DNA of 64,000 bases from positions 193,206 through 257,205 of the IMG/VR virus record IMGVR_UViG_3300027754_000034. The stretch is one strand, 5' to 3'. Positions 38,836 to 64,000 of the stretch are shown here, in pieces. Positions within the stretch are counted from its first letter, which is position 1. Every line of letters begins with the position of its first letter. The translations under genes and the position numbers were made by a program. The notes beneath the pieces are model-generated. The model did not search any database. It was given only the letters and a program-made list of their open reading frames with translations, and was not told the origin of the DNA.

Positions 38836-39336
38836 ATGAATCGTAGTGCTATTTCTCCTTCGCGAATCTCAACGTCTCTGCGTCGCATAGCTTCCGCTAT
38901 CGAGAATTCGGAGAATCCCTCACGTGAGTTGGTAGCAAGGGAGTTACAACGTCTAGTAAGAAAAATAGCTGGTAACGAAGACGGAATTTCAGTACTTGGT
39001 CAAACGGTAAATGTTGAGGTTCCCGGTTTGGGTCTCGTACCTGTAATACTTACTAAAGTCGAATTCTTTGATGAGAAGAATACTCGAAATGTGGTAGGAA
39101 CTATAAATGGTTTTATGGTCAAGACTAGTACATACAGTAGATCTTATAAGGTAGATCCTACTGATATCCTTCCTGTGGAGTTAAAGCAATATTTCGATCC
39201 TGAAGGATTCCGACCTGTCGACGCTTTTGCCATCGCAATAGACAAAATTCTTAAGAATTATGGGATAGAGGACGAGTACCCAATTATAGAAAATGGTATA
39301 TATTTTTCTAGTGAGCAGGATGACGACTCAATATAA
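38836..39336 (+). CDS. Hypothetical protein with LRRIA..IE.S.NPS leader
   Basis: Leader shared with the 60016 and 61100 genes. Confidence 0.75.
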   Translation: MNRSAISPSRISTSLRRIASAIENSENPSRELVARELQRLVRKIAGNEDGISVLGQTVNVEVPGLGLVPVILTKVEFFDEKNTRNVVGTINGFMVKTSTYSRSYKVDPTDILPVELKQYFDPEGFRPVDAFAIAIDKILKNYGIEDEYPIIENGIYFSSEQDDDSI

Positions 39337-39353
39337 CGATAAAGAATAGTAGA

Positions 39354-39382
39354 CTACAGGATTCCTCATCGAAATCCTGTAG
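39354..39382 (+). terminator. Hairpin after the 38836 gene
   Basis: ctacaggatt...aatcctgtag. Confidence 0.5.
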
Positions 39383-39615
39383 AGTGCTCTACACGCATTT
39401 AATTTATAAAATGTGTTAAGTATATAGGGAAATAAAGTGGAGAAGTATTCATCCTCCCTGGGTCTAAAGTTAGTAAGTACATAACAATGTGATTAAAGAA
39501 ACTCGGGATATTGAAGTTCAGTATAAACCCGGCCCACATGACGACGTTAGAACATGTGGTTCCTTTATATAATAAAAACCAGGAATAACTAATGATTTTT
39601 TTAGTATAGTATTCT

Positions 39616-39849
39616 GTGATACAGATAAAATTTTCTAAATTTGATGGTGGTAACATAGTATCAGCTGGCGGAGATTTAGTAGAAGTCACTGATAAATATG
39701 TAATAGTTAAACATCAAGATGTCAGTTACTCCTTCCGAAGGACTCCCGGTTCTAAATCGGGATATGGTATTGGGGCGGCAAAAAATTGGAGGCTGGGGTT
39801 AGAAGAAAGAAACCAGCATGTTCACCCTGAAAATCTGAAGAAAAGATAA
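39616..39849 (+). CDS. Small hypothetical protein
   Basis: 77 aa; SH3-like beta pattern; followed by a hairpin. Confidence 0.55.
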   Translation: MIQIKFSKFDGGNIVSAGGDLVEVTDKYVIVKHQDVSYSFRRTPGSKSGYGIGAAKNWRLGLEERNQHVHPENLKKR

Positions 39850-39886
39850 TTTAACCATCAATATATAAGCTATTGATGGTTAAATT
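39848..39886. terminator. 16-bp-stem inverted repeat
   Basis: aatttaaccatcaata-tataagc-tattgatggttaaatt. Confidence 0.6.
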
Positions 39887-39914
39887 TTGTGTAACTTCCT
39901 AACGGAGAATTTCT

Positions 39915-40175
39915 ATGAAAATGCTTAACGTTGTTTCAGTTTTGATTCTAGCTCTCGTGTCTTGTGGTAAGGACGAAAGTAAGCCTGTTGATGCCGCTTC
40001 TTCGGCTTCCGTGGGCTCTGGTGGCTCCGGTGGTGCCAAAATGGTTAGTGGTTCAGGAGGCGCAGACGGAGACGGAGGAACGGGCGGAGCGGTTGCATCC
40101 TCGGTTTCCGGTTCTGGTGGAGCCGGTATGGGTGGTTCTGGTGGAGCCGGAATGGGTGGTTCTGGCGGCAAGTGA
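39915..40175 (+). CDS. Gly/Ser-rich small lipoprotein
   Basis: RBS GGAG; signal peptide with lipobox LVSC; GGSGGAGMGG repeats. Confidence 0.8.
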   Translation: MKMLNVVSVLILALVSCGKDESKPVDAASSASVGSGGSGGAKMVSGSGGADGDGGTGGAVASSVSGSGGAGMGGSGGAGMGGSGGK

Positions 40176-40196
40176 CTATCTAGCATATAATGTCCA

Positions 40197-40228
40197 AGGG
40201 GAAACGACCGATATCAGTCGTTTCCCCT
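40197..40228 (+). terminator. Terminator after the lipoprotein gene
   Basis: aggggaaacgac-cgatatca-gtcgtttcccct. Confidence 0.7.
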
Positions 40229-49217: not shown

Positions 49218-50648
49218 ATGAATGGAGAAAAACTAGCTAAATATTTAGCTACGTTAGAGCCTGGGTATACGAATAAATCCAGAATAACTTATACTTGTGA
49301 GATGTGTGGTATTCAAAATCACATTATTTTAAAATGCTTTAAAGAAAAAATATCTAAGGGCTCGTTATATTGTAAGAAGTGTTCACTGAAGCAGAAATGG
49401 CAAGATGAAGAATATCGATCTAAAATAAAGAAAAGTCAAGAAATAATATGGAATGAAACTGATACGAAAAATAAAATATCGGAAAAAAGCAAGAAATTGT
49501 GGCAAGATCCCGAATACAAATCTGCTCAGTTAAAAATTCACTCCGACCCCGAATATCTAAAATCAGCTAGAGAACATTCAATAGACAATTGGAAGAGTGT
49601 AGAATTCAGAGAAAACCAACTGAAAACTCGAAATACTCCTGATTTTAAAGCAAAACAGTCACAATCAATGCGTGATTTATGGAATTCTAACAAATATGTA
49701 GAAAAAACCCTTCTGTCCTTATCAAAAAAATTCAGTAGTGACTTTAAATCATCGTTAGAGATCATAACATCTAATATTTTAACTGCTCTTAGTATTTCAT
49801 ATAAAGAGCAGTATGTAGTAGGACCCTATATTTTTGATTTTTATCTTCCCGATTTTAAAGTATATATTGAATGTCAAGGAGAGTATTGGCATTCATTAGA
49901 ATCTGCTGTTAAGCGTGATGCGAGTAAATCTACTTATCTAAGGAAGGCTCATTCTGATAGTAAGTTTTTGTACTTAAATGAGGTAGATTTCTGCAATCCT
50001 ACTTTAATCAAGCAAAAAATTATTAGTATTTGTGGTTCGACTGCCATAACACAGGTTAAGTCGTTCGAATTAAAAAGTGTAGATATTAAGTTAATTAAAA
50101 AGGATGATCGGGATTTTAATTTAGCACATAACTTGTTAACTAGTTTTCATTATGCGGGTTTTGGTAGAGCTGCTAAGGTAATATTTGGAGCATATAAGGA
50201 TAAGGAGCTCATAGCCGTATGTAAGTTTTCACCGCCAATAAGACAGGAAGTGGCCACCTCTTTAGGCATTAGTCCTAAAAATATGCTTGAGCTTGATAGG
50301 TTCTGTATAAAACCAGATAGGCAAATAAAGAATTTTGCTAGTTGGTTTTTATCGAGAGCAGCTAAACTCATTTTTAGTATAGATTCTTCAAAATCTCACT
50401 TGGTGTCTTTTGCTGATAGCACTTACAATCACTTAGGAACTATTTATAAAGCAGCCAATTGGGCGTATGTTGGTGTTGTTTCCCCTGATTATTACTACGT
50501 TAATGGTCAGGGCTGGATATTACACAAAAAGACATTATATAATCAAGCTGTAAGAAATAAAATGAGGGAGTCTGATTATGCTGAAAAGCATCATTATGTA
50601 AAAATATACGGAAAAGAAAAATATAAATTTATTCTTGCTAAGTCTTGA
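49218..50648 (+). CDS. Zn finger + helical repeats + PD-(D/E)xK nuclease + Mom-like GNAT fusion
   Basis: CEMC..CKKC; W-anchored ~20-aa repeats; FDFYLPDFKVYIECQGEYWH; FHYAG...LELDRFCI...SFADSTYNHLGTIYKAANW. Confidence 0.8.
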   Translation: MNGEKLAKYLATLEPGYTNKSRITYTCEMCGIQNHIILKCFKEKISKGSLYCKKCSLKQKWQDEEYRSKIKKSQEIIWNETDTKNKISEKSKKLWQDPEYKSAQLKIHSDPEYLKSAREHSIDNWKSVEFRENQLKTRNTPDFKAKQSQSMRDLWNSNKYVEKTLLSLSKKFSSDFKSSLEIITSNILTALSISYKEQYVVGPYIFDFYLPDFKVYIECQGEYWHSLESAVKRDASKSTYLRKAHSDSKFLYLNEVDFCNPTLIKQKIISICGSTAITQVKSFELKSVDIKLIKKDDRDFNLAHNLLTSFHYAGFGRAAKVIFGAYKDKELIAVCKFSPPIRQEVATSLGISPKNMLELDRFCIKPDRQIKNFASWFLSRAAKLIFSIDSSKSHLVSFADSTYNHLGTIYKAANWAYVGVVSPDYYYVNGQGWILHKKTLYNQAVRNKMRESDYAEKHHYVKIYGKEKYKFILAKS

Positions 50649-50675
50649 CATTGTTATTTAGCTTTTGATTATAAT
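50645..50675 (+). promoter_or_regulatory. Sigma70-like promoter candidate
   Basis: TTGACA-19 nt-TATAAT, 11 nt upstream of ATG 50687; the spacer is long. Confidence 0.35.
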
Positions 50676-50686
50676 ATGGTTTTGTA

Positions 50687-51820
50687 ATGGATAGTCATGG
50701 GTTTGTATTAACAGAAGCTGCTCAATATGCATTTAAATGTCAGGATGTTTATCCTGACATTTTGTCTTTTGCTGCTGCAATCCCAGAACATCTCAAGCCG
50801 ATATTTCTTTTACCCGTTAAGATGGAAGCTATTGTGGCTTCTGAATCTAACTATTTGATAGCTACTCGAATAGCAGCGTGTGCTATGGATGGATCCACCC
50901 CTGAGGGTGATCTTTTTAGTTATCAATCATTCTTATATAATGATATAGAACCTACTATTCCTAATTCATCTCCGGGATCTATTTTCGATATAAGTGACGC
51001 CGATAGTCTTACCCATCATCAAGAGTATAATTTCGATCAAAATATTCAAGTTCCGACTGATACGAGTTATATGTCTGATGTTGATATGACTCAATATTTC
51101 AGTTATCCATATAGAACGGTAGAACAGCCCGTAAGAAAATCCTCACTGAACTCCCATCATGTTGCTTTAATCAGATTAGCACTAAATCCGGATTATTTGG
51201 AAACGAAAACTCCCAGAAAAATAAAGAAAAATGCTGATGAATGCACTGTAATTTTGATAGATTATGATCGGAAGACACGAACTTTTACATTTAATGTGGT
51301 TTGTGGTAGCGATAAAAAAGTAGTAAAAGCCGCTTTATCTGATGTAAGAAATGTTGTACTGGTTTGCAATTGCGAATTCTGGAGATACAATGGTCCTGAT
51401 TACAATGCGAAAACCAACAAATTTTTATTAGGTCCCCCCGTTGGTCGTGCTACTCCCCCAAATATAAGAGATCCTAAGCGACAATATTGGCTTTGTAAGC
51501 ATACGTATGCTGTCATAGTTAGATTAGACGATTTCTTGAAGGACATTTCTTCGGAAAATCTAGAACTTGACGAAAAGTCCTTGTTAAATGTAGTAGATAG
51601 GGAGTATGATAGGTTAGCAGAGAAGACTCTAGTTCCTCTTGAAGATGTCGAGCAGGACGTGGAAGTAGATTGGGAGGGATTTGATGGGCAACAACAAATC
51701 CCTGTTTATTTTGATGAAGATGAGCAGCAACAAACTCCTGTCGATATGGAACAGGATCAACAAGATGTAATCCAACTCACTCAGGATGACGTCCAATTTT
51801 TACAGCAACAGCAAAAATAA
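50687..51820 (+). CDS. Hypothetical protein with SWIM-like Zn finger
   Basis: VCNCEFW...LCKH; acidic/Gln-rich tail. Confidence 0.68.
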   Translation: MDSHGFVLTEAAQYAFKCQDVYPDILSFAAAIPEHLKPIFLLPVKMEAIVASESNYLIATRIAACAMDGSTPEGDLFSYQSFLYNDIEPTIPNSSPGSIFDISDADSLTHHQEYNFDQNIQVPTDTSYMSDVDMTQYFSYPYRTVEQPVRKSSLNSHHVALIRLALNPDYLETKTPRKIKKNADECTVILIDYDRKTRTFTFNVVCGSDKKVVKAALSDVRNVVLVCNCEFWRYNGPDYNAKTNKFLLGPPVGRATPPNIRDPKRQYWLCKHTYAVIVRLDDFLKDISSENLELDEKSLLNVVDREYDRLAEKTLVPLEDVEQDVEVDWEGFDGQQQIPVYFDEDEQQQTPVDMEQDQQDVIQLTQDDVQFLQQQQK

Positions 51821-51843
51821 CTCACTACTTTGTAAAGTAGTAT

Positions 51844-52248
51844 ATGCCTACATATAGTTATAAGTGCACTTCTGATTCATGTGAAAATGTTCAGGAGTGT
51901 GTAGCTTCCATGAAAGAATATAATGTAATCACTCCAGCATGTAAAGAGTGTGGTAGTTTATGTAATTATTTCTATGTGCCTTCGGTTCCCTTGGTTTCAT
52001 TTTTGGACGGTCCTTCGGGCAGTTGGCCATCAAAGGGAAATCGGTTCAAAAAGCACCGAGAAAAGTCTGCTGAAGCCGCTAGCCTAAGGCAAAGAGATAG
52101 ATATGGTGCAGTGGGCGGGGCTGTCCCGAATTTTCAAGGTAAAGATACGGGTACTTGGGCAGAAGCTCAATTTCAGGCTATGAAAGAAAAAGGTGTGGAA
52201 AGTGCTGCTACATATAATGATAAGGTAAAATCCGAAAAGACGAAGTAA
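51844..52248 (+). CDS. FmdB-like zinc-ribbon protein
   Basis: MPTYSYKC....C...CKECG. Confidence 0.75.
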   Translation: MPTYSYKCTSDSCENVQECVASMKEYNVITPACKECGSLCNYFYVPSVPLVSFLDGPSGSWPSKGNRFKKHREKSAEAASLRQRDRYGAVGGAVPNFQGKDTGTWAEAQFQAMKEKGVESAATYNDKVKSEKTK

Positions 52249-52281
52249 CTATTGGTCTTTTATTCAGTCGTCTACATTAAG

Positions 52282-52923
52282 ATGCCGAGAGTATTTTCTT
52301 TAAATCGTCGCAGGAAAAATCTTTTAGATATAGTCATTTCTTCAAAATCTGACGTCGGATCATATCAATTCGCGGTATCAGATAATTTTGATGGAATGTT
52401 TTCGGATTTTCAAGTAGTGCCCAAGGCGGGATACCGTTCTAAAGGTGTAGTAGAAGGATCTCAGTCTTATTCGGGGTTTAGAGGGTTAACCAGATTCCTT
52501 CTAAATCCAGAAGACTACGTGATGTCTTTCCCGGACCTGGATGATACAAAGCCTTTTTGGATTACTGTATCCGAAATTCCTTATGGAGGAGCTGCTGGCG
52601 CTCCTAGTGCACCCCATTTGGTGTTGCCATATAACACCACCCCTAATCTAGGCTTTAATATTTCGGGAAGCGTTTCTGCTACGGTTACTGAAATACAATT
52701 ACCACAATTAGTTTCTAATATTGTAATAGATGTAGTGGGTCCAGATGGTTTAAATTTGGCCTATGAGGAAAATGGAACCGTATTTACTATCCCACTAAAT
52801 GCGGGTCTTGACGTTGAGTATTGGTCAACATTCCACACAACCGGACAGTTATTCTTGTCTAGTACTGGAATGGACACAGAATTCAGTGCTGCTTTCCGAC
52901 TGATGAACAGTTTAGCCTTATAA
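52282..52923 (+). CDS. Putative structural protein
   Basis: Beta-rich, in a late-type cluster. Confidence 0.55.
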   Translation: MPRVFSLNRRRKNLLDIVISSKSDVGSYQFAVSDNFDGMFSDFQVVPKAGYRSKGVVEGSQSYSGFRGLTRFLLNPEDYVMSFPDLDDTKPFWITVSEIPYGGAAGAPSAPHLVLPYNTTPNLGFNISGSVSATVTEIQLPQLVSNIVIDVVGPDGLNLAYEENGTVFTIPLNAGLDVEYWSTFHTTGQLFLSSTGMDTEFSAAFRLMNSLAL

Positions 52924-52952
52924 TACTTTACCAAAATTGGTAGGAGATTTCA

Positions 52953-53507
52953 ATGCCCCTGATTTACATAAGAGTTGTTAATGAACAAGTCATTGACCGG
53001 TCACTTTTAATAGATAAAATTGACAAGAGCCAGGGGAACTTTGAAGGTTATGCTCAGCGTGCAAAACAGGCTGTTTATATCCCTTACGTAAATCCGGATG
53101 ATACTTCTGTAAAGGGGTATTTAAATCTGGTACCTACGGATGAAGTCCTGTTGGCGGCAAATAATGGATCTATAAAGGGTCTTTCAGACGCTAACTACAT
53201 TACTTTCTCTCCTGTAGACGCTTTAGCGATTGCGAAAAGCGTGGTTGTGGCTGCGGCCAACGACGTCATGAACAACTGGACTGACGTGGATGGCTTGACT
53301 TTTACATCTGTTTACCCAGATGACACTCGTCTCCAATTGAAGAATATGGGTGGAACGGTCCAGACAATTACTTCAGGGGACTTTGCAGTGTTTACCGGTA
53401 TAGCTATCCGTGTGTTGGATGCAGTAGTAACTATTGGCGTTCCAGCAGCAGGGTGGCAAGTGAGAGTCCAGGCTAATTCGCTATTTAGCGAGTGGTTCAC
53501 TCTCTGA
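52953..53507 (+). CDS. Putative structural protein
   Basis: RBS AGGAG; elevated GC. Confidence 0.6.
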   Translation: MPLIYIRVVNEQVIDRSLLIDKIDKSQGNFEGYAQRAKQAVYIPYVNPDDTSVKGYLNLVPTDEVLLAANNGSIKGLSDANYITFSPVDALAIAKSVVVAAANDVMNNWTDVDGLTFTSVYPDDTRLQLKNMGGTVQTITSGDFAVFTGIAIRVLDAVVTIGVPAAGWQVRVQANSLFSEWFTL

Positions 53508-53537
53508 TAAGACTTTAGAATAAAGAGGAGCAAACAA

Positions 53538-54338
53538 ATGCGAGTCGGTGCTATCAGAACGGACATTCAAAAGGTTTACTTAGCGGACATTGAGAATCGC
53601 GCTCAGCGTTGCTTCTCTAGCGAGCCGCCAGGGCAGTCTCGTTATCTCGAAAAGCCGTCAGATGACGACTTTAAGAGCGTGTTAGATACGTACGCGTTTT
53701 TGTCGCTGTACGGGTCTAACAATGCGGCTACGGTCAACACGACTGGTGGAAATAACGTTTTTAAGGTTCGCGTTTCAGCGACAGCTGCCTACACGACCAT
53801 TAACGTTACCTCGAATGCTGCTTTAGCTAAAGCTACGATCCGTAATGAGTTGAATGCAGGATTTGAATCTGCCAGCCTTCCGCTAGTTGCTCGTTTAGTG
53901 GGCAATCGCATCATCGTAGATTCAAATGGATCAAATTCCGGTCCGGCTGCTTACATTGGGGTTGATGTTGGTGGCAATTCAACACTCAATCCGATAGTGG
54001 GCTTCACGGCTGGTGCACTCTCTGGGTTATCAGTTACTGCTCTTAAAGCGGCAGTATATGCTGGTGGTACAGTAGATGTTTCGAGCGCCACTATTTTGGC
54101 TCTTTCTACTTTTACCCGTTTGCTTGCTGCAGCTCAGGATGCACTAGTCGGCGGTATAGCAGACTTGGCAGCACCAAGTCTCATTGAGACCGGTCCCGTT
54201 CTCTTGTCCTTCGTTTATGGTAATCTCTCTAAGTACAACTCGGCTGATTTCCAGCCGGGTGGAGACAGAGCAGGTTTAACTGCTGGTGCGGCTGTTGTCT
54301 GCTTAGAAGACGACGGTTCTACTCTTTTCTCAGTCTGA
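53538..54338 (+). CDS. Putative abundant structural protein
   Basis: RBS GAGGAG; Ala/Gly-rich with GC-shifted codons; followed by a strong hairpin. Confidence 0.62.
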   Translation: MRVGAIRTDIQKVYLADIENRAQRCFSSEPPGQSRYLEKPSDDDFKSVLDTYAFLSLYGSNNAATVNTTGGNNVFKVRVSATAAYTTINVTSNAALAKATIRNELNAGFESASLPLVARLVGNRIIVDSNGSNSGPAAYIGVDVGGNSTLNPIVGFTAGALSGLSVTALKAAVYAGGTVDVSSATILALSTFTRLLAAAQDALVGGIADLAAPSLIETGPVLLSFVYGNLSKYNSADFQPGGDRAGLTAGAAVVCLEDDGSTLFSV

Positions 54339-54352
54339 GAGAGCGTAGTATT

Positions 54353-54391
54353 TTATGCCTACCCAGGGTGTGAATCCCCGGGTAGGCATAA
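54353..54391 (+). terminator. Terminator hairpin
   Basis: ttatgcctaccc...gggtaggcataa. Confidence 0.7.
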
Positions 54392-54435
54392 TCGTATTAG
54401 TGGTTCGATGAGTATTGTGTGTTGGAAAATTTAAA

Positions 54436-54669
54436 ATGGAACAAGAAGAATTAGAAACTCATGACATTTATTTGGCGGCTTATCTTAGCATCGCGGGTTG
54501 TGCGCTTAAACGCAGATATCGAACTGGTCCCAGGGTTTATTTTGTATTTGTAAATCCTGCAGGTTCTATAAATGAACTACGTGAATCGTATTATGCTGGT
54601 AGCGCGACTGTAAAAGCCCATGACTTCTCACAAAAAGTGATCGGGATGAAGAATCTTTGCTTTGAATGA
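54436..54669 (+). CDS. Small DUF5659-like protein
   Basis: ETHDIYLAAYL...RVYFVF pattern. Confidence 0.6.
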   Translation: MEQEELETHDIYLAAYLSIAGCALKRRYRTGPRVYFVFVNPAGSINELRESYYAGSATVKAHDFSQKVIGMKNLCFE

Positions 54670-54673
54670 GTGA

Positions 54674-54967
54674 TTATTGACTTGCTATTTGCCGCAATTT
54701 TTTTGGTTTAGATTCGAATATTCCACTATCTAGGTGGGTGGATTCAGCTTTTCCCTGCATCTCGTCTTTTTTGTCACGTATCATATTTGCTAAATAACCG
54801 AGGTTTTCCGTTATTTCAAGTTCTTTAGGTGCAGTCAGTACTCTATGAATTTTATCTAATATTTCGATTAAGTTCTCAGAATACCAAAATTCTTTATTCT
54901 TAGGTATTCCTGACCAATTGAGTTCCTCGATGCCAGCTATTCTGAAGGAGATTTTTCTCAGATTCAT
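54674..54967 (-). CDS. Hypothetical protein with MNLRKISFRIAG leader
   Basis: ATG at 54967; leader matches those of 56446 and 63884. Confidence 0.72.
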   Translation of the reverse strand: MNLRKISFRIAGIEELNWSGIPKNKEFWYSENLIEILDKIHRVLTAPKELEITENLGYLANMIRDKKDEMQGKAESTHLDSGIFESKPKKLRQIASQ

Positions 54968-55020
54968 AATTCTTGCTCTATTCAAGAGCCTTTATTAGAT
55001 TACTAATAATTAATTCAATT

Positions 55021-55404
55021 ATGAGCCGTTTAGTGTCTAGTGGTGTTATAATATACGATCAGATAGTAATAGTTGATCCTCTGAATTCTCAGGATAGAGT
55101 ACTGGATGTCTTAGTCGGTGATTTATCTTTAAATCTTTTTGTTAACAATGTGAAATATAACTGGGATATCTTAGATGGATCATCAGTATTAGATTCAAAT
55201 ATCTCTCCTGGGAGTATTTATTTTAATGAAATTAGTGGATCCCCGGGTTTTTATTCTGTAAGATTCTATCCTGATAAAACTGGCTATTGGTATACATCTT
55301 ACGTATATAGTGTAAACTCGCTTGAAATTGTTAGGGATTATGATTTAGTACCAAGAAATTTCTTCGGGTCTTCTTCTTCTGGCATAGTCGCCAGCTTTAC
55401 TTGA
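55021..55404 (+). CDS. Ig-like structural protein
   Basis: PGFYSVRFYPDKTGYW beta-sandwich pattern. Confidence 0.6.
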   Translation: MSRLVSSGVIIYDQIVIVDPLNSQDRVLDVLVGDLSLNLFVNNVKYNWDILDGSSVLDSNISPGSIYFNEISGSPGFYSVRFYPDKTGYWYTSYVYSVNSLEIVRDYDLVPRNFFGSSSSGIVASFT

Positions 55405-55405
55405 T

Positions 55406-56089
55406 ATGACCGTAGTTTATAAGAATCAGCAGCTTAGTGTAGGCGAGATAAGCTTGCAGCTACAGAATGCTGAAGGGCAAATCATTAATGTCAATTCCGT
55501 CACATACTCTATTTATGCGTTAGATGGGAAATTAGTTTCGGGAAAATCTTTACCAGCCATTTTGGCTGTTGATGGAAAATACTATATTCCTTGGGAATCC
55601 AATATACCAAATGGTACTTATAAAATTTTGTGGGAAATCAATACAAATGGCATCCAGATAGAAATCAAAGAATCATATATTTTTGTGTTAGATAAGGCGG
55701 CTTATCCTAAATCTCCTTCAAGTGTCTGTTGTATTCTGCCTTCTAGTATACCTAATCCATTATCAAAAGTCTTTATATCAGGAACAACATTAGGTCCTGA
55801 AGATTTAAATATGTACTTGAACGATTCAATAACAGGTCTTTTCATCGACCCTTATTCAATATATTGGACGATATTTAACTGTCGCGGTTGTATCGAAACC
55901 CGGAAAACTGTTGGGTCTAAATACGCTGTTGGTAAATTTTACGCCCCGTACACCGTAATGGGTCCGACTGCTGAATATGATATAGTATGGGAATTTAAAG
56001 AGAATGTGAATTCACCTCTGATGTCAAAAACTCAGAGATTCTCAGTGTTAAATACTACAAACCTAAAATTTAAAGAGTGTGACTGTTAA
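55406..56089 (+). CDS. Structural protein with two related Ig-like domains
   Basis: GKYY..W..GTYKILWE repeated as GKFYAP....AEYDIVWE. Confidence 0.62.
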   Translation: MTVVYKNQQLSVGEISLQLQNAEGQIINVNSVTYSIYALDGKLVSGKSLPAILAVDGKYYIPWESNIPNGTYKILWEINTNGIQIEIKESYIFVLDKAAYPKSPSSVCCILPSSIPNPLSKVFISGTTLGPEDLNMYLNDSITGLFIDPYSIYWTIFNCRGCIETRKTVGSKYAVGKFYAPYTVMGPTAEYDIVWEFKENVNSPLMSKTQRFSVLNTTNLKFKECDC

Positions 56090-56446
56090 CGTTTATCAAA
56101 CAGTTTCTTGGTCTTTCTGGTCTCTCTGTCTACTGTAGTGTTTCTATCGAGATCTGCTTCCTCGGAGAGGAGGTTAGCCATGTCCTCGGCTTCATTTTCA
56201 TCATCATCATCAGTTTCAGGTGCTGGTTTTTCATACTCTCTAAAGAAATAATCTAATCTTTTATCTAGTATGGTAAGGTTATCAACCTATTGTTTCCGGG
56301 TCTTTACCTGATAAAGCACCCGACATACCCCAAGCCACGAGATTAGAAGTCTCTGTTTTCCAAAAATCAGGATTTTTAGGTAAGTTATCGAATTTAGGTA
56401 TTAAATCTAATGATGCGATCCGAGTAGCTATCCTTTTAAGATTCAT
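56086..56446 (-). pseudogene. Leader-bearing gene (MNLKRIATRIAS...) broken by a one-base insertion at about 56286
   Basis: ATG 56446 to TAA 56086 spans 361 nt (120 codons + 1). Removing one G in ACA-ATA-G-GTT-GAT restores a 119-aa ORF. Not in the supplied ORF track. Confidence 0.68.
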
Positions 56447-56480
56447 AAATAATCATTAAAATTTCGGATTAAAACCACAA

Positions 56481-56825
56481 TTATCGCAAGTTCATGAATT
56501 TTCTAATTCTTGGAGCTTCTGTATGATCTAGTAACGAATCAAAATTATCACGCTTTATGTATGTGTCTATGATATCATATATGAAACCTTCCTTAGACCG
56601 TGTCTTCCTAAAATCGTAAGATTCAAAGAAAGAGTAGAGGCACACTACTTTTTCTGATATTATGCGACTGAGTATTAATGCTTCCAGATTGATTGATTCT
56701 CCCTCGCTATAACTTCCATATACTGGGCCTCTGAATACCGGAACTGATTTCTTGATGGAGTCGAAAAACTCTATCATTAATGGTTCTGGGTGTCGGATTT
56801 CGCTAATATAATGAATCTTGCGCAT
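56481..56825 (-). CDS. Hypothetical protein
   Basis: 114 aa. Confidence 0.55.
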   Translation of the reverse strand: MRKIHYISEIRHPEPLMIEFFDSIKKSVPVFRGPVYGSYSEGESINLEALILSRIISEKVVCLYSFFESYDFRKTRSKEGFIYDIIDTYIKRDNFDSLLDHTEAPRIRKFMNLR

Positions 56826-56976
56826 GATGTTTCTATTTAATTAATAAGCAAAAAAGACTTGCACGAATTTCGAATAGATTACTATATGACATACATGGTT
56901 CCTGTGTGTGTGAATCTAGTGCAACACTAGTGATTGTACCAAATATACATTAAGCCTGTTTTCGGTATTTTTCTTT

Positions 56977-57888
56977 ATGAGTGGTGTTGTATTTAAAAGA
57001 AATCAACAATTAAGTAGAACGAGTGGTTTATCTTTATTTCTTAAGGGCCAGGATAGGACTTCTAAAAATGCTGCCCAACTATTTTACGATATATTCGATT
57101 TTACTACTGGTATTGAAGTATTACTTCCACCTGCTAATCGAGTACCACAAAACCCTACGGTAGGTGAGTATTACGCTGATTTTACGGTGCCTATTGATGC
57201 GAATATAGGAGATTACCGAATTCGGTGGAAGGCTCGAGAATATTTAAATTCCCCAGTAGTGAACATATTGCAAGAATTTGCGATAGTTTCTGACCCTACT
57301 CAATTGGTAAGTTTGCCAGGTGCCTCTAATAATCAGTTAGATATGATAAAGAGCCTTAGGATATTGTTGCGAGATAATAATCCAGCAAGAAACTATCACT
57401 TCTTGCCTCCGTCTGGCGAAGAAAGCGTTAACCAGATGAATAGAATATTCGGATATATATGGGAGGATCCAGAGCTTCTTGAGTACCTCCGCGTGTCTTT
57501 AGACATCATAAACATGTATCCGCCTCGGACTTTCTATGCGACTTTGGATCAACTAATGCAACAGAATGCAGGGTGGAGGTCTTTAGTGCTAACTGGTGCT
57601 ATGGTATATTCACTACAAGCATTAAGTCTGAACTGGGTGGCAGACGAGTTTGCCTACTCAATAGGCGGCGTTTCCCTTGATTTAGAAAAATCATCCAAGT
57701 ATTCATCCATGGCTGATGCAATAGATGGACGATTTAAAGAGATGTTATCCGCTGATACTGGAGCTAAAGCTACCGTTAAAATCATTCGCGGTATACAACA
57801 GTCAAAATATGGGATAGGAATAAGGTCATCATTTGGTCCATCAGTAGGCCGTGGTGCTCTTACCCCTCGACGGTTTATTGGAATGTGA
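56977..57888 (+). CDS. Putative head-completion / neck protein
   Basis: N-terminal Ig-like domain; C-terminal adaptor-like DPELLEYL...EFAYSIGGVSLDLEKSSKY. Confidence 0.55.
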   Translation: MSGVVFKRNQQLSRTSGLSLFLKGQDRTSKNAAQLFYDIFDFTTGIEVLLPPANRVPQNPTVGEYYADFTVPIDANIGDYRIRWKAREYLNSPVVNILQEFAIVSDPTQLVSLPGASNNQLDMIKSLRILLRDNNPARNYHFLPPSGEESVNQMNRIFGYIWEDPELLEYLRVSLDIINMYPPRTFYATLDQLMQQNAGWRSLVLTGAMVYSLQALSLNWVADEFAYSIGGVSLDLEKSSKYSSMADAIDGRFKEMLSADTGAKATVKIIRGIQQSKYGIGIRSSFGPSVGRGALTPRRFIGM

Positions 57889-57955
57889 TTAAATATATAC
57901 TGTCATTAGAGAATATTTAGTATTGTTTTGATTAGTACTGATTTCTTCTTCCGGT

Positions 57956-57992
57956 TCATGGTCCTAAATATAATACATATTTAGGACCATGA
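57956..57992. terminator. 16-bp-stem inverted repeat upstream of the fourth nuclease-Mom gene
   Basis: tcatggtcctaaatat-aatac-atatttaggaccatga. Confidence 0.6.
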
Positions 57993-58035
57993 TGTGTACT
58001 AATTCCAATTTATAGTCCAAATTGTATAGTAATTT

Positions 58036-59940
58036 ATGTATAATTGTGAGTATTGTGGGAAAGAATTTCCACGACCAGTCACATCTGGTCATAAGAGGAA
58101 GTGTCCGGAGTTCCTCGCAGCTAAGCCCTTAGATGAGAGAAAACCACCTGCATGTCTTTGTGGTCATCAAGAAAATTCCTTCACTAGTATGAAGAGACAC
58201 AGAGGTATATGTGAATTATGGAAAAATAGAGATAAAAAACAAGTAACTAATGAAAGAATAATAAATACTTTCGAAAAAAGGTATGGGTCAGGTGTAACTA
58301 ATGCTATTCATATTCCAGATGCTAGGAGAAAAAAGGAAGAAACCAATCTAAAGAAGTACGGGGCTATAAATACCTTTTGTAAGGATTCTATATTATATGA
58401 TCAAATTCAAAGTTATTGGAATGGAAAAGATAGGTCAGCTCACTTAGATAAAAATAACTGGGCGCGACCTGAAGTTAAAGCCAAGATTAAAGAATCTAAT
58501 TTAAGAAAATATGGTGTAACCAATCCGTCTTTACATCCAGAAATTCGTGCTAAACAGCTGGCCACTTCTAAGGAGCGTTATGGTGATGAACAGACTTTAA
58601 GAGTTCCTGAAATTAGAGCCAAGGGAATAAATACTATGATTGAAAAATATGGAGTTCCCAATGCAATGAAACTTGAAGAAATCCAAAATAAAGTCAAGGG
58701 AACTAATTTAGAAAATTACGGTGTTGAATGGACTACTCAAGATATGAATACACGTTTAAAACAATATGAAAGCCAGATTAATCATTACGGTAGTTATTAC
58801 TTTCAGACTACTGAGGCTAAGAAAATTATAAAAGACAAATTTCCTGAATCATTAGACAAATTTCATGCTACCAACATAGAACGCTATGGGGTCCCCCATC
58901 CTATGCAGAACCCCGAGTATGCTAGAAATCAATTACAACATTCTAGACGTTCAGGACCGAATAATCTAGAGAAAAAATTCCAGAGCATCTTCCCTCAATT
59001 TTTATTTACAGGAGATGGTTCATACTGGAGATATTTACCAGCATTAAGTAAGAATAAAAACCCTGATTTTCTTCTGATAGGTCCCGAACCTGAAAATCCG
59101 TTCCATGGTGCAAACTCAATAGTAGAAATATTTGGTGATTATTGGCATTCTGAACGTTTTACAGGATTAAATAATGAAGACCATGAATCTTTGACTATTG
59201 CAGCATGGAATGAAATAGGTATGAATTGTTTAGTTATCTGGGAAAATGAATTTAAGACAAATAATTGGAAATCTAAAGTAAAATATTATCTTAATAGGAT
59301 CAAGATAAGCAATTCAGTACCTGTTGGTGTCAAGCGTAATCCGTCACTTATCAATCAGGATTTGGTAGATTTTTCCTTTTCAGATATTAAGATATCACGT
59401 CTATCTAGTTTCGATGACGCTAAAAAGTTTTTAGATGACTATCATTATTCTGGATATGGGCGTGCAGGATCTGTAAATTATGGAGTGTATTTAGGTACCG
59501 ATTTGCTTGCAGTTGTTAAATTCGCCTCGCCTGTCCGTCAGGGCATCGCCGCCACTCTCAAAATAGAGTCAAAGCAGCTTTTGGAGTTAGACCGTTTTTG
59601 CATTCACCCGTCTCGTCACAAGAAAAACTTTGCCTCATTCATCATGGCTCGTGTAATTCGCCTTATTAAGCGGGACTTTCCTATCATTCGTAAGTTAGTT
59701 AGCTTTGCCGATCCTCGTGCTGGTCATACCGGTCATATCTACAAGGCATCTAACTGGACCGATTTAGGTAAAACTGCTCCCTCTTATTATTACCTCGATC
59801 CTAATGGAAATGAAGTTAACAAAAAGACTCTTTACCAGTCCGCCAAGCGTCAAGGCCTAATAGAGCGCGAATATTTTGAGTCTTTAGGTTATAAGAAAGT
59901 GCAGACACCCGCGAAATTTAAGTATTCCTACACTTTATGA
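58036..59940 (+). CDS. Zn finger + KYG(V)-repeat array + PD-(D/E)xK nuclease + Mom-like GNAT fusion
   Basis: About 8 (K/R)YG repeats; NPDF...IVEIFGDYWH...VIWENE; YHYSG..GVY..LELDRFCI..VSFADPRAGHTGHIYKASNW. Confidence 0.82.
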   Translation: MYNCEYCGKEFPRPVTSGHKRKCPEFLAAKPLDERKPPACLCGHQENSFTSMKRHRGICELWKNRDKKQVTNERIINTFEKRYGSGVTNAIHIPDARRKKEETNLKKYGAINTFCKDSILYDQIQSYWNGKDRSAHLDKNNWARPEVKAKIKESNLRKYGVTNPSLHPEIRAKQLATSKERYGDEQTLRVPEIRAKGINTMIEKYGVPNAMKLEEIQNKVKGTNLENYGVEWTTQDMNTRLKQYESQINHYGSYYFQTTEAKKIIKDKFPESLDKFHATNIERYGVPHPMQNPEYARNQLQHSRRSGPNNLEKKFQSIFPQFLFTGDGSYWRYLPALSKNKNPDFLLIGPEPENPFHGANSIVEIFGDYWHSERFTGLNNEDHESLTIAAWNEIGMNCLVIWENEFKTNNWKSKVKYYLNRIKISNSVPVGVKRNPSLINQDLVDFSFSDIKISRLSSFDDAKKFLDDYHYSGYGRAGSVNYGVYLGTDLLAVVKFASPVRQGIAATLKIESKQLLELDRFCIHPSRHKKNFASFIMARVIRLIKRDFPIIRKLVSFADPRAGHTGHIYKASNWTDLGKTAPSYYYLDPNGNEVNKKTLYQSAKRQGLIEREYFESLGYKKVQTPAKFKYSYTL

Positions 59941-60015
59941 CCTTAATGGCTTTTCAAGCGATATCTTAGGCAAATGTCCAATAGTATATGATGGATTTTT
60001 TTAATTCATACCTAT

Positions 60016-60444
60016 ATGAATCCGTCTGATATACCTAATGCTCTTCGTCGTATAGCTGTAGCAATCGAAAATTCGCAAAATCCATCTCGCAAATTAGTCG
60101 CTCGCGATTAAGGCTTATTAGTTTCTAAATTATCATCGAAATACTCAAAAAGGGCACCATTTAATATCCCGTATGATTTCGCATCTTTAATCAAGGATTC
60201 AGGACACTTAGATTCCATTAATAGATTCACACCTTTAGATGAATCCGAGCTAAACGAGCTTTCGGAGTTAGATGTACTCGTTAGGGCTGCCATACAATAC
60301 TGGTCCAGCCCCAGATCGAGCTTTAATGTTTATTGGTCTTATGAAGGTAAGGAATATACGAAGGATTTAATTACTAAGCTGTTGAAGGAAGTTGGTGAAA
60401 GGATAATGAATCAAGTAAAGCAAAGACATCGTATGAAGTTGTAA
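60016..60444 (+). pseudogene. Leader-bearing gene with premature TAA at 60109-60111
   Basis: MNPSDIPNALRRIAVAIENSQNPSRKLVARD*GLLV...; the frame stays open to TAA 60444. The stop aligns with Leu (TTA) of the 38836 leader. Confidence 0.75.
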
Positions 60445-60461
60445 ATCCAACCGCAGTCATA

Positions 60462-61100
60462 CTATATAAAGTCTTCGCGGCTCAACCCTCTATAACCATA
60501 AGGGTCTTCCGCTTCCTCGGCATTATCGGCATAATCGGCAGCAAATGCCTTTGCTTCGTTAGAAACTTGGGCATCCTCACGGAGTGAATCGGATAGAGAA
60601 GACCACCCATGTTCTTGGTCGCTGAGATCTTTTTCATCTAAAAATCTTTCATAAAGTTCATCACTACTGAGGACCTCAACACCATCTAATTTTAGAGTGC
60701 AACCAGTGGTACAATCTGGTTCATCAGAAATATCAACACTAATATATGACCAAGAGGTCCTACCATCTGAATCTTTCTTCATAGAAAGACTGTACTCGAC
60801 TGGAACCGTAAATTCGAATGGTTTTCCATCGAAACGACCCTTAAATGTGAAATTTGCCGTAAGATCCTTCTTCTTATCGTAATTCCATCTTGAATCCGTC
60901 AATTCGAAATTCGAATTTCCTTTGTGAGTCCTTCCTCCCGCCAATTTATTTGTTAAATAAGCCTCAGCTTTTCTATTTCCGTTTATGGCATCAGATAACG
61001 CCATAAGATCTTTTGCTACGGCAGATTTATTGGGAGACTTGGATGCCGCTAACGCGGCAGCCATTCTCTTCATCATATTAGATGCATTTACGGGGTTCAT
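60462..61100 (-). CDS. Hypothetical protein with related leader (MKRMAAALAASKSPNKSAVAKDL)
   Basis: 212 aa; the leader aligns with 38836 and 60016. Confidence 0.72.
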   Translation of the reverse strand: MNPVNASNMMKRMAAALAASKSPNKSAVAKDLMALSDAINGNRKAEAYLTNKLAGGRTHKGNSNFELTDSRWNYDKKKDLTANFTFKGRFDGKPFEFTVPVEYSLSMKKDSDGRTSWSYISVDISDEPDCTTGCTLKLDGVEVLSSDELYERFLDEKDLSDQEHGWSSLSDSLREDAQVSNEAKAFAADYADNAEEAEDPYGYRGLSREDFI

Positions 61101-61138
61101 ACTATGAATGGTATATTAAAAGATAAAATATATACGGG

Positions 61139-61255
61139 TCATTCAGGTTCCATATCGGCTCCGGTGAAATTGGCTCCCTGAGTTTTTGCCCCGTCCAGTA
61201 TTGCCCCGATCAATTTCGCCCCGGTCAGGTCCGCCCCGCGCAGGTGGCTTTGCAA
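61139..61255 (-). pseudogene. Remnant 3' end of a pentapeptide-repeat gene
   Basis: LQSHLRGADLTGAKLIGAILDGAKTQGANFTGADMEPE*; in-frame TAG two codons upstream of the TTG; GC-rich patch. Confidence 0.72.
61142..61219 (+). repeat. 78-bp direct repeat, copy A (copy B at 63890-63967)
   Basis: 76/78 identical by manual alignment. Confidence 0.92.
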
Positions 61256-61412
61256 AGACTAAAGGTATGAAAAGAATGTGAGTGTCTTGAAGCTTTATGA
61301 TATAAAAAAGTCCATACTCAACCCAAACTCAAGTTCGTACTCGAACTAAAAAATTAGAGATGATACCGGATGTGGTATTATCTTCCATGTAAAATCTTCA
61401 CAAGGCATATAA

Positions 61413-62432
61413 ATGAGTATTGATAGGTATGACTACAAATATTTCGCTCAGTCATTTCATAAGTGGAGGAAAGAAGTATCCCAGCACGATGGTAGTGGGA
61501 TAGAACGTGAAAAGCTACAAGCTTTAGGAACTGCCATATGGCCCCATAGTTACCAAAAATCAGATAATGATGAAGAAGCTATGGATCACCTGTCTGATTA
61601 TGTGTATTCTAATCCTCAGTTTTCAGCATTTTTAATGATACCATCGGATCGCATCGCTTTTTTAGCTTCAGCGAGGTGGGCAGATCAGGGGTTTCCTTCT
61701 ATTGTTATGGGACATAAGTACGCTGCAGCGCTTATGGCCACACATGTGCCTGCCGAGATTTCATCCATAACGCTTCCACCTTGGAAAGCTTTTTGTATCG
61801 AGATTCCGGACAATCTTTTATTTATACTAAATTCTAAATCTGAGGAAATACCTATCAAAAGAGTGTTGGTTCAGTATATCGGGAACTTCCAAGATAAATC
61901 AGGCATCTGGCAATATGTGGCTTTTACTAATACTGATGTCACTATATGGAACCACGGTGTCAAATCGGTGCAGATGGCAGAAGGTCAATTTGAAAAGTAT
62001 GAAGGGGTAGAAAATGAATGGGCGGATACGATATTTAGTTTACCGCCTAATAGTATTGACGACGCTACTAATAAGCTAATAGGTAAGTTAATCATAAACG
62101 TCTGCTTGGCCATGTCTGATCCTGATAATGTAAAGACACGACCCGAGAATGGTTCAGTAGGTAGCATATCCTCTAACAGAGGAAATTTTAAAAATGTGAG
62201 AACCTACAAATTAGGGAAACCCATTTCTATAGACGTAAGACAAGCCATAAATGACTACATGCATGGGCGTAGTCGGTCTGGGGGAACCCCCTCAGTGCAA
62301 ACGATCGTTCGTGGACATTGGAAACCCAAGTTGACTTCTAGGATCGGTCGTCCGGTTTGGATAGAACCCTACATTAGAGGCCCTGAAGACGCACCTGTTT
62401 TGATTAGGTCCGTCAGGTTAGGAAAGTCTTGA
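61413..62432 (+). CDS. Hypothetical phage protein
   Basis: 339 aa; C-terminal VRGHWK...VWIEPYIRGP motif. Confidence 0.75.
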   Translation: MSIDRYDYKYFAQSFHKWRKEVSQHDGSGIEREKLQALGTAIWPHSYQKSDNDEEAMDHLSDYVYSNPQFSAFLMIPSDRIAFLASARWADQGFPSIVMGHKYAAALMATHVPAEISSITLPPWKAFCIEIPDNLLFILNSKSEEIPIKRVLVQYIGNFQDKSGIWQYVAFTNTDVTIWNHGVKSVQMAEGQFEKYEGVENEWADTIFSLPPNSIDDATNKLIGKLIINVCLAMSDPDNVKTRPENGSVGSISSNRGNFKNVRTYKLGKPISIDVRQAINDYMHGRSRSGGTPSVQTIVRGHWKPKLTSRIGRPVWIEPYIRGPEDAPVLIRSVRLGKS

Positions 62433-62471
62433 CTGTGGATTTTAATACCATTTTTATGTAATGTGTTAAGT

Positions 62472-62939
62472 ATGAGCGATGATAAGGTATACTACACTGG
62501 CGTTGTTTTAGACGATTTGGAAATCAAAAACCTTCGTGATTCATTAGATGATGCTTTAGACTCATTTTACGAATCTATGGACACGGACGAATATGCCCAA
62601 GTAAAACAATGGGTACGTTCTAATATAAATCCTACCCACGGTCATGAACAGTTAAATCATCATATGACCATATATGCTAAACCAGCAGATGAAGAAGTTC
62701 GGGAAGATTTAGGAAAGGAGTTGAAACTGACCATAGACGGATTCGGTATTGATCCGGAGCTAAAAGTAGCAGCGTGGCGTGTGAAATCACCCATTTCTGT
62801 AGAATCTGGGGTTCCACACATTACTGCTCTTTTAGGTCCAAGTGGGAAGGTATTTAATTCTAAGAATATAAAAGTATGGGTCGATTTAGTTCCATTTGAT
62901 TTGGTGGGTAAATTACAAGAAGTCACTTCAAAGAAATGA
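62472..62939 (+). CDS. 2H phosphoesterase
   Basis: Two HxT motifs: NHHMTIY and VPHITAL. Confidence 0.75.
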   Translation: MSDDKVYYTGVVLDDLEIKNLRDSLDDALDSFYESMDTDEYAQVKQWVRSNINPTHGHEQLNHHMTIYAKPADEEVREDLGKELKLTIDGFGIDPELKVAAWRVKSPISVESGVPHITALLGPSGKVFNSKNIKVWVDLVPFDLVGKLQEVTSKK

Positions 62940-62974
62940 TAGATATGACTTTATTGACGTATTAATATTGCACC

Positions 62975-63457
62975 ATGAGTGAAAATTCTCCTGCTAACCA
63001 TGATTTATGGGATAGGATTCAGAAGCTTACTCGCGGTGATGTTGCCTATATTATACATAATAAACGCCGTGTAGATGGACCGAACGGAGGTAAAGGGTTT
63101 AAGAAGCACCCATCTGCTTACTCTAACGGTTGGGCGGTGAAGTTATATAACGAATCTGGTGGGAAATGGGTCTCCTCTAAAAATGCTAGCATTGCGTTAA
63201 GAATAGCTAATCTTAGCGATTGGTTCAAAAAAGAAGATTGGGTAGCTATTGATACACATGGCAAGATAGTAGGACCATGTGGCCAATCAGAGAATAGACC
63301 CAAAGAGACTCACAAGGGTCAAGACCCTCTGAAATGTTTGCCTCGCTCTAAAGCTCACCAGATGACTAAAGCGGAAAGGGCTTCTGCTTCACGGCGCAAA
63401 AAGCGTTACGAAAAAGAAATTCCGGATTCAAAAAAACCAGTTCATAGTCCGACGTAA
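62975..63457 (+). CDS. Basic hypothetical protein (DUF5872-like)
   Basis: PSAYSNGWAVKLY..GGKW and WFKKEDW...PCG...KCLP. Confidence 0.65.
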   Translation: MSENSPANHDLWDRIQKLTRGDVAYIIHNKRRVDGPNGGKGFKKHPSAYSNGWAVKLYNESGGKWVSSKNASIALRIANLSDWFKKEDWVAIDTHGKIVGPCGQSENRPKETHKGQDPLKCLPRSKAHQMTKAERASASRRKKRYEKEIPDSKKPVHSPT

Positions 63458-63482
63458 AAATAATTACTCCGGTGTATGTTGT

Positions 63483-63761
63483 TTGATGGAAATCATCGGC
63501 ATACTACTCGGTTTGATCGGTCCTGTTCTTCTCATTTTGGTGTTATCCGGAAGTCCTGTTAACGCCTGGATGAAAGGTCTTAAATATGTAAGTTTAGTGA
63601 TTGGTCTTTTACAGTTATTTACTGCGTTGATCATAGTAACTGCAACAAACCCTAAGTCGGTTGGTACAGATGATATTTGGATGCGTGTCATACTATTGAT
63701 TATCTGGTCTATCTTAAATGTTTTGGCTTACATCAAGACCAGGAAATCAGAATACCAGTAG
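63483..63761 (+). CDS. Small three-TM membrane protein
   Basis: Three hydrophobic helices in 92 aa. Confidence 0.65.
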   Translation: MMEIIGILLGLIGPVLLILVLSGSPVNAWMKGLKYVSLVIGLLQLFTALIIVTATNPKSVGTDDIWMRVILLIIWSILNVLAYIKTRKSEYQ

Positions 63762-63884
63762 AGTATTGCACTCCGGTTCGGTTTCCGGAACCAACCACTT
63801 AAAACCTGTTGAACCCCGTAGATAGGCGATCAAGTTCGAATTCCCAAAAGCGATCCGCATTGATATTCTTTTCACGTCCATCAT
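63747..63884 (-). CDS. 45-aa ORF with MDVKRISMRIAFG leader
   Basis: ATGA-coupled to the pentapeptide gene stop; below the ORF-track cutoff. Confidence 0.55.
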   Translation of the reverse strand: MMDVKRISMRIAFGNSNLIAYLRGSTGFKWLVPETEPECNTLLVF

Positions 63885-64000
63885 ATAATTTCAGGATCCA
63901 TATCGGCTCCGGTGAAATCGGCTCCCTGAGTTTTTGCCCCGTCCAGTATTGCCCCGATCAATTTCGCATTGGTCAAATTCGCATTGCTCAAATTCGCATT
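63881..64000 (-). CDS. Pentapeptide-repeat protein, 3' end only
   Basis: NANLSNANLTNAKLIGAILDGAKTQGADFTGADMDPEII*; runs off the window edge. Confidence 0.82.
   Translation of the reverse strand, partial: NANLSNANLTNAKLIGAILDGAKTQGADFTGADMDPEII
63890..63967 (+). repeat. 78-bp direct repeat, copy B
   Basis: Matches 61142-61219 with 2 mismatches. Confidence 0.92.

Follow-up and report, generated by a model that had tools for sequence, protein, structure and literature searches.

Two conserved leader modules on unrelated small proteins of phage-G-like huge phages: possible capsid-loading tags

Some tailed phages bring proteins into the procapsid by means of a short terminal segment. In T4, the capsid targeting sequence (CTS), with the consensus MKTYQEFIAE, is an N-terminal address label common to unrelated, non-essential and fast-evolving proteins (IPI-III, Alt) that are packed in the head and injected against host defences. 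The tail of the HK97 protease (gp4) is said to target the capsid, a result attributed to Duda et al. in 2013, and the C-terminus shared by the lambda proteins C and Nu3 is a segment of the same kind. The CTS of the T4 internal proteins is the precedent for capsid targeting (PMC7411985, PMC9958956), and the C-terminal propeptide of the SPN3US protease (gp245) has been proposed to be capsid-targeting as well (PMC7411985). Here we describe two leader peptides, type I and type II, that are carried by otherwise unrelated proteins encoded in the last 64,000 bases (the window) of IMGVR_UViG_3300027754_000034, a viral contig of 257,205 bp from a freshwater metagenome. An earlier note on this DNA had proposed that such leaders load diverse effectors into the phage head. 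We found that the two tags represent a large unannotated protein module sharply limited to one clade of huge phages, and we consider capsid loading the best single explanation for them, with a probability of about 45%. Leader genes are named below after the start of their open reading frame (ORF) in the window, and their products accordingly (p38836 and so on).

The type II leader is a basic helix-turn-helix of about 40 amino acids (aa) with the consensus MKPS[QE]L[SA]xxLRRIA[SA]AI[DE]NSKNP[SD]RxLVA[RK]DLKKLI. Met1, Pro3 and Ala14 were invariant in 128 aligned N-terminal leaders of this type, and Ser20 (126/128), Pro23 (127/128) and Val28 (125/128) were nearly so. A family profile of 42 positions, searched against 1.84 billion representative proteins, matched 853 protein clusters at E ≤ 1e-3 and 238 at E ≤ 1e-10; all ten matches whose source was looked up were metagenomic. 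We examined 152 leader proteins, consisting of the best 150 profile matches and two earlier finds. The module began at residue 1 in 140 of them and was first encountered at an internal or C-terminal position in the other 12. Two copies were present in 17 of the 152 proteins, eight of which comprised only a tag, an Ala/Pro-rich linker and a second tag, and some proteins were the module alone. The leaders have a median net charge of +4 and an isoelectric point (pI) of 10.5. AlphaFold predicted two helices (approximately residues 3-19 and 25-38) separated by the NSKNP turn, and four packed helices for a natural two-module protein (predicted local distance difference test, pLDDT, 78; predicted template modelling score, pTM, 0.62), this packing being intramolecular and of moderate confidence.

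The module had no Pfam match at E ≤ 0.1, no PHROG family and no PDB sequence match, and Foldseek returned no structural match at E ≤ 0.001. No match to the leader or to p38836 was obtained by tblastn against 50,697 cultured-phage records, and the pattern RRIA[SA]AI[DE]NSKNP was absent from 185,579 cellular species genomes. The strict pattern IAxAI[DE]NSKNP matched only once in IMG/VR, being too narrow for a census. We found no description of the leader system in the searchable literature.

The type I leader is shorter, about 12 aa, with the consensus MN[LF]x[KR]IAxRIA, and is proposed to form an amphipathic helix. The window has three occurrences of the DNA pattern for [KR]I[AS]xRIA, whereas dinucleotide-preserving shuffles gave 0.01, and the seven-residue core stood four residues after the initial Met of an ORF in most of the 26 distinct matches that a six-frame translation of the window and of 30 loci, the first ones, provided. 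With a type I profile from which window sequences were excluded, three window genes obtained 24, 23 and 17 bits and every other window ORF at most 4.7 bits; the former are the three genes to which the earlier note had assigned the leader. The pattern for the type I N-terminus was found in 11 IMG/VR stretches, for about 1-2 expected by chance (our estimate from base frequencies). Beyond the contigs of this genome itself, the matches came from four contigs of 62, 202, 377 and 427 kb, two of them with several matches, and those of 377 and 427 kb were confirmed as members of the same capsid clade. When the window was searched with the type II profile, the best matches after its own three genes included type I N-termini, aligned to profile positions 8-17, and type I looks like the first helix of type II standing alone. 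Third codon positions varied freely in both leaders, indicating that selection acts on the peptide. In locus L030 (IMGVR_UViG_3300032053_000004; ORF 3822, minus strand), the SRIA unit of type I was expanded to six tandem copies, MNFSRIASRIASRIAS... A candidate fourth type I gene of the window, encoding p18759, was unsupported by the type I profile and no relatives of it were found.

The three type II genes of the window, also as placed by the earlier note, scored 68, 57 and 31 bits with the family profile. The first (38836..39336, plus strand) is intact and encodes 166 aa, with the leader at residues 7-46, nucleotides (nt) 38854-38973, followed by an acidic ORFan cargo of 119 aa for which the ESM Atlas gave no lead; it lies 148 nt 3' of a Mom-family gene and 1.75 kb 3' of the capsid gene. 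The reading frame of the second (60016..60444, plus strand) meets a TAA at 60109-60111, 31 residues into the leader. This frame of 142 codons is otherwise open, including 110 codons past the TAA, and the same TAA recurs in a contig from a second sample. The third (60462..61100, minus strand; leader nt 60978-61100) is divergent and encodes 212 aa. The three type I genes are all on the minus strand: 54674..54967 (97 aa; leader MNLRKISFRIAG, nt 54932-54967), 56282..56446 (54 aa; leader nt 56411-56446) and 63747..63884, where a type I-like leader, MDVKRISMRIAF (nt 63846-63881), heads a stub of 45 aa starting at 63881 or 63884.

The gene disruptions noted previously were recovered in part. The in-frame stop of gene 60016 is plain and gene 63884 is indeed a stub, which lies at repeats beside the contig end and could for this reason be an assembly artefact. 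Full-length genes with the leader of this stub encode 352 aa in the same genome and 475 aa, with pentapeptide repeats, in a 27-kb contig of the same sample. A frameshift in gene 56446 was not demonstrated; an acidic ORF of 66 codons in another frame (56086-56286) may be its continuation. The last 125 nt of the window (63876-64000) were 100% identical to the interior of that 27-kb contig, IMGVR_UViG_3300027754_004729 (L018/L025), where a type II leader heads pentapeptide repeats and type I leaders head a 208-aa cargo and the 475-aa pentapeptide protein. The assembly probably broke within the repeats at the window end, and the 27-kb contig may be either the continuation of this genome or part of a co-occurring variant. 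The part of this genome that was read, about 100 kb, holds at least five type II and at least four type I genes.

The sequences following the leaders were indeed unrelated, as the earlier note had claimed. When the module was masked, the remainders of the 152 proteins fell into 125 BLASTP groups, and the window cargos had no detectable pairwise similarity, with the sole exception of p54967 and p56446, which share 16-20 residues past the leader (E = 2e-7). Almost none of the cargos belonged to a Pfam or PHROG family. They were acidic, with a median pI of 4.67 and 79% of them below pI 6. Pentapeptide repeats occurred behind both tags (type II, E = 1.8e-77; type I, E = 6.6e-61), and the other identifiable cargos included LRV/HEAT repeats, a C39-family peptidase with a type I-like N-terminus (E = 4e-14) and a protein with a weak APH-like kinase signature. 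One leader protein, which was not among the 20 that were rescanned, had a weak head-protease match (Pfam Mu-like_Pro 7e-5, phrog_328 1e-4). The tag-plus-cargo modularity, found across 853 clusters, is established.

The rapid turnover suspected previously was also apparent. The first ~54 residues of p61100 recur in the products of two genes of the contig that lie outside the window (near 115 and 177 kb), with amino-acid identities of 93 and 100%; over ~185 nt counted from the MNP start codon, the DNA is about 92 and 99% identical (our estimate from the alignment). The three genes then diverge abruptly at the leader-cargo junction into different cargos, one of which is a pentapeptide-repeat protein. 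It is clear that cassettes have been copied and recombined at the leader segment or close to it. A 93-nt direct repeat (61142-61234 and 63890-63982, 91% identical), corresponding in each case to the 3' end of a pentapeptide gene just 5' of a leader gene, reads as the footprint of a cassette duplication or recombination.

Free-standing genes for HNH or Mom-family endonuclease-like proteins were observed at 2028-3761, 37846-38688, 49218-50648 and 58036-59940 of the window and at 11688-13211 of locus L117, with a conserved 64-nt segment at window positions 38425, 50400 and 59695. Two such genes directly precede type II genes (38836 and 60016), and more of them are found beside leader genes elsewhere. 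They may mobilise the leader-cargo cassettes or target the leader-coding DNA. In other leader-gene neighbourhoods (L118, 5322-5555; L031, 151-390), we observed genes for IF1/eIF-1A-like, SET-domain, trypsin-like protease and sigma-70 proteins, a gene content typical of huge phages.

Compared with the T4 CTS, the type I leader is of similar length (about 12 versus about 10 aa), and both are found at the N-terminus of several unrelated proteins. There is no sequence resemblance between the CTS and MN[LF]x[KR]IAxRIA, however, and the leaders belong to another lineage of phages, which is phage-G-like and whose scaffold is separate and protease from an unrelated family. We found neither Leu/Ile-x-Glu nor any other cleavage motif after the tags, in contrast to T4, and the second, folded tag of 40 residues, its occurrence in C-terminal, internal, duplicated or isolated form and the hundreds of cargo families have no counterpart there. 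Moreover, the T4 cargos are packed and injected, whereas for the present proteins encapsidation is proposed. The system would work like the T4 CTS without being a member of that family, from which it departs in sequence, in phage lineage and in the behaviour of its module, with no support for cleavage. The protease and scaffold tails of HK97, SPN3US and lambda offer another likeness, since the protease of the clade ends in a strictly conserved KG[KR]IAS[LVI][AS] tail, the core of which recalls both tags, and the scaffold carries a GR[TIV]AS segment near its C-terminus. The resemblance extends over 4-5 residues and is not statistically discriminating; the known tails serve one or two assembly proteins and not a large effector repertoire. 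Encapsulin cargo-loading peptides are also terminal (N- or C-), can be repeated, and dock diverse cargos on the inner face of an HK97-fold shell, which would fit a position-independent tag and an ultra-conserved capsid protein of HK97 type. Binding is in our case an analogy, the tags do not resemble known loading peptides in sequence, and the shell is here a DNA-packaging phage capsid. Finally, the MIX/RIX type VI effectors and the phage polyvalent proteins likewise carry a conserved delivery module on many variable payloads enriched in conflict functions, although by a different delivery route; our payloads are mostly small, acidic, single-domain ORFans.

Several observations connect the leaders with the head. 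The phage of the window belongs to an uncultured freshwater clade of phage-G-like huge phages, and its sequence was present only in freshwater DNA metagenomes, none of the runs listed being RNA. Its major capsid protein (36194-37081, plus strand; phrog_2522, E = 2.7e-46) was 78-97% identical across 483 IMG/VR stretches from contigs as long as 618 kb, whereas the scaffold-like protein was only 41-44% identical in those capsid-conserving relatives. Similarly, in contigs of 180-436 kb, the capsid protein was 90-97% identical and the neighbouring scaffold-like protein 35-61%. Such strong purifying selection on a shell protein is unusual. The closest cultured phages by capsid protein were Tunturiibacter phage Tunturi_5 (45% identity) and Bacillus phage G (38%), and the head region of Tunturi_5 contained no leader. 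Leaders were found only where the capsid protein is at least 86% identical to that of the window. In this subclade, the scaffold, p30220 and p27661 families were present in all 19 full-length loci tested, whereas they were absent from the six loci tested in the sister subclade with 78-80% capsid identity, in which no leaders were detected in 194 kb over 16 loci.

The arrangement of the genes points in the same direction. Across 63 capsid-centred loci, 36 leader genes were 3' of the capsid gene, 31 of them co-oriented with it, and three were upstream; half were within 2.9 kb. In a relative with a 427-kb contig, seven tandem and partly overlapping type I genes start about 400 nt past the capsid gene and are followed by more leader genes a few kb further on, and in another relative a type II gene begins about 100 nt past it. 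The window gene 38836 occupies the same post-capsid position, behind two genes that appear to have been inserted. Some head proteins also contain tag-like motifs. The earlier note had listed internal echoes of the type I core in four ORFs; those in ORFs 25280, 50687 and 62975 were at chance level, but RIAFRIS (27910-27930), within the tag-like motif DLS...RIAFRIS (27865..27930, plus strand) of p27661, was conserved in homologues. The motif DLS...[IL]Ax[RK][IV]A is found in the p27661 homologues of the leader-positive subclade, the strict pattern being present in 10 of 21 anchor-bearing homologues versus 0.7% of shuffles. The putative prohead protease (32522-34033, plus strand; 35% identity, E = 5e-43, to the Tunturi_5 protein annotated as head maturation protease), an enzyme that has to be enclosed in the head itself, ends in WKGKIASIACF (33998..34030, plus strand). 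Among 40 distinct tails of its homologues in the leader-positive subclade, 38 read [WR]KG[KR]IAS[LVI][AS]; the core [KR]IAS was counted in 30 of 40, and in 38 of 40 with a relaxed pattern. This core, common to the protease tail and the leaders, is no more than a suggestive link. A conserved segment GR[TIV]AS..GAKKLG near the C-terminus of the poly-Glu scaffold-like protein (gene 34074-35309, segment 35205..35243, both plus strand) bears a weak resemblance to it. We also considered whether the type II tag was homologous to the N-terminus of p30220, which was not supported by hhalign.

These circumstantial data, namely the gene position by the head genes, the p27661 motif, the protease-tail core, the co-occurrence in one clade and the types of cargo, make capsid targeting plausible, and from them we infer the capsid destination, the receptor and the injection. 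Both leaders would act at the protein level as docking tags by which accessory proteins are selected for entry into the procapsid. The tag would bind a conserved component of the assembling head, with the inner face of the highly conserved capsid protein or the scaffold/core proteins specific to the subclade as candidate receptors. The head would then close around the tagged cargos, mostly small and acidic, hold them together with the DNA and release them into the host upon infection; these cargos would include DNA mimics made of pentapeptide repeats, the C39-like peptidase and the kinase-like protein. New tagged genes would arise by recombination at the tag-coding segment. One can go further and imagine a "loading code" of two tags docking directly onto the interior of the near-invariant HK97-fold capsid protein in the manner of encapsulins, with many effectors per virion, the 850+ tagged families forming a catalogue of injected host-takeover and anti-defence proteins and cargos being exchanged by recombination of the tag segment, possibly aided by homing endonucleases; we regard this fuller scenario as doubtful.

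A number of observations weigh against a capsid destination. The density of leader genes 3' of the capsid gene (0.11 per kb) equals that of the window as a whole, so that an enrichment near the capsid gene is unproven, and the asymmetry around this gene is partly trivial because conserved head genes take up the room on its 5' side. Most leader genes of this genome lie far from the head genes, in accessory islands and on either strand, among genes for Thy1, adenylosuccinate synthetase, sigma factors and homing endonucleases. The resemblance to the protease tail concerns 4-5 residues, and a profile of this tail, being too short, does not single out the leaders; the comparison of the type II tag with the N-terminus of p30220 was, as mentioned, not significant. 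The clade has no cultured member. In addition, there is no conserved cleavage motif after either tag (an [SAG]-x-Glu was seen by eye behind roughly half of the type II leaders), and the module, unlike the T4 CTS, can be C-terminal, internal, duplicated or the whole protein. The removal of the leader by the prohead protease, which the earlier note had listed among the things to check, is thus not supported: the anatomy of the proteins argues against an obligatory cleavage, and the variable position and copy number together with the lack of a cleavage motif fit a retained, position-independent docking domain better than a cleaved signal of T4 type. Those features are equally compatible with docking at a hub outside the capsid.

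Such a hub is the main rival explanation. The tag would be a general docking or oligomerisation module, binding another tag or a replication factory, a membrane, the nucleoid or a host machine, and proteins with two tags would cross-link accessory proteins and bring many of them together in the infected cell. The indifference of the module to its position agrees with this idea, as do the tag-only proteins, the 17 two-tagged proteins with their eight tag-linker-tag forms, the four packed helices predicted for one of them and the scattering of many tagged genes among non-structural genes. The position of the module even varies within a single conserved family of about 330 aa, encoded 3.5-8 kb 3' of the capsid gene (for instance in L056, 14114-15151, minus strand) and without homologue in the window: a type II-like module is C-terminal in four loci (L056, L057, L068 and L070) and N-terminal in L086 (13504), and the proteins of L056 and L057 have in addition a type I-like N-terminus (MSTIASRVAGRI). 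On the other hand, the predicted packing is intramolecular and of moderate confidence, no partner was identified, and a hub leaves unexplained the post-capsid arrays, the tag-like motif of p27661 and the co-occurrence with one set of scaffold/core genes. We consider it unlikely on balance. A basic helix-loop-helix of ~40 residues with a net charge of +4 and a pI of 10.5 could also be a nucleic-acid-binding helix-extension-helix (SAP/HeH-like) that tethers the cargos to DNA or RNA. This is improbable, since no SAP, HeH or Rho_N match was found in Pfam at the threshold used above, nor any match in PDB or with Foldseek; the invariant residues (Ala, Pro, Val, Asp) suggest packing rather than a basic surface, and the 12-residue type I leader, which bears the same class of cargo, is too short for such a domain.

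The recombination at the junctions raises the question of whether the leaders are mainly DNA-level substrates for recombination or homing, i.e., cassette ends whose peptide has no targeting role. The ~185 nt that are 92-99% identical in three genes of this genome and end abruptly where the cargo starts, the 93-nt and ~65-nt junction repeats at the window end and the Mom/HNH endonuclease genes adjoining several leader genes all speak for it; recombination nevertheless accounts for the spread of the tag and not for the conservation of a peptide kept in 853 clusters (Met1, Pro3, Ala14, Pro23, Val28) while synonymous positions vary, and no DNA repeats connect most of the window leaders. We judge it quite improbable. 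A conserved leader followed by a hypervariable remainder, in tandem arrays, also recalls the leader peptides of ribosomally synthesised and post-translationally modified peptides (RiPPs) or bacteriocins, in which case they would serve the processing or export of a variable core, and a C39-family peptidase is indeed encoded at one neighbouring locus. This protein itself bears a type I-like N-terminus and therefore looks like a cargo. Cargos of 60-430 aa that are acidic and often folded (pentapeptide, LRV/HEAT, peptidase), the absence of a double-glycine motif and of any NHLP/Nif11 Pfam match, Pfam listings of the examined neighbourhoods without modification enzymes or ABC exporters, and the C-terminal occurrence of the module make the RiPP hypothesis very improbable. 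As for ordinary paralogy over the full length, which the earlier note had named as an outcome that would overturn its proposal, the ~20 residues shared by p54967 and p56446 past the leader are the only point in its favour; it is effectively refuted by the 125 cargo groups in 152 proteins, the unrelated cargos of the window and the different Pfam domains behind the same tag.

Should the tags prove to load cargos into the capsid, sequence alone would suffice to pick out hundreds of candidate effectors for injection from phages that cannot be cultured, and novel anti-defence proteins and DNA mimics could be sought there in abundance. Huge phages of the phage-G type would then have arrived on their own, and at a much greater scale, at the internal-protein strategy of T4. 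Loading tags may in this case help to explain the strong conservation of the capsid protein and, being short and portable, could be used to pack foreign proteins into large capsids. Even with another destination, the module of 853 clusters marks a pathway shared by many accessory proteins.

The other genes of the head module are arranged around those described above. The large terminase gene (23319-25256) is followed by the portal gene (25839-27635) and by that of p27661, a post-portal protein of 590 aa (27661-29433, plus strand). No similarity was found between p27661 and the annotated "DNA ejection protein" of Tunturi_5. Small head-module proteins, p29872 and p30220 among them, are encoded between the p27661 and protease genes, and a protein of 216 aa (35516-36166), a candidate decoration protein, precedes the major capsid protein, itself a candidate docking surface. 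The C-terminal half of p29872 (29872-30174, 100 aa) consists of KAPKK-type repeats resembling a histone H1 tail, and this protein may serve to condense DNA inside the head. A loose likeness to the type II module is seen at its N-terminus, QRIAAEIKE...NPEAREVL, the match not being significant (E = 11). The G+C content of the head genes is 0.44-0.49 versus about 0.35 in the rest of the window. Upstream regions, read by eye, revealed no promoter motif common to the leader genes and the head genes. A near-consensus promoter of sigma-70 type (TTGACA, 17 nt, TATAAT; ~50640-50686) was observed just 5' of the 377-aa ORF at 50687, and TATAAAT-like elements 5' of the protease and endolysin genes. Finally, a thaumatin-family protein (Pfam, E = 4e-15) is encoded at 40898-41881, between a methyltransferase gene and the endolysin region.

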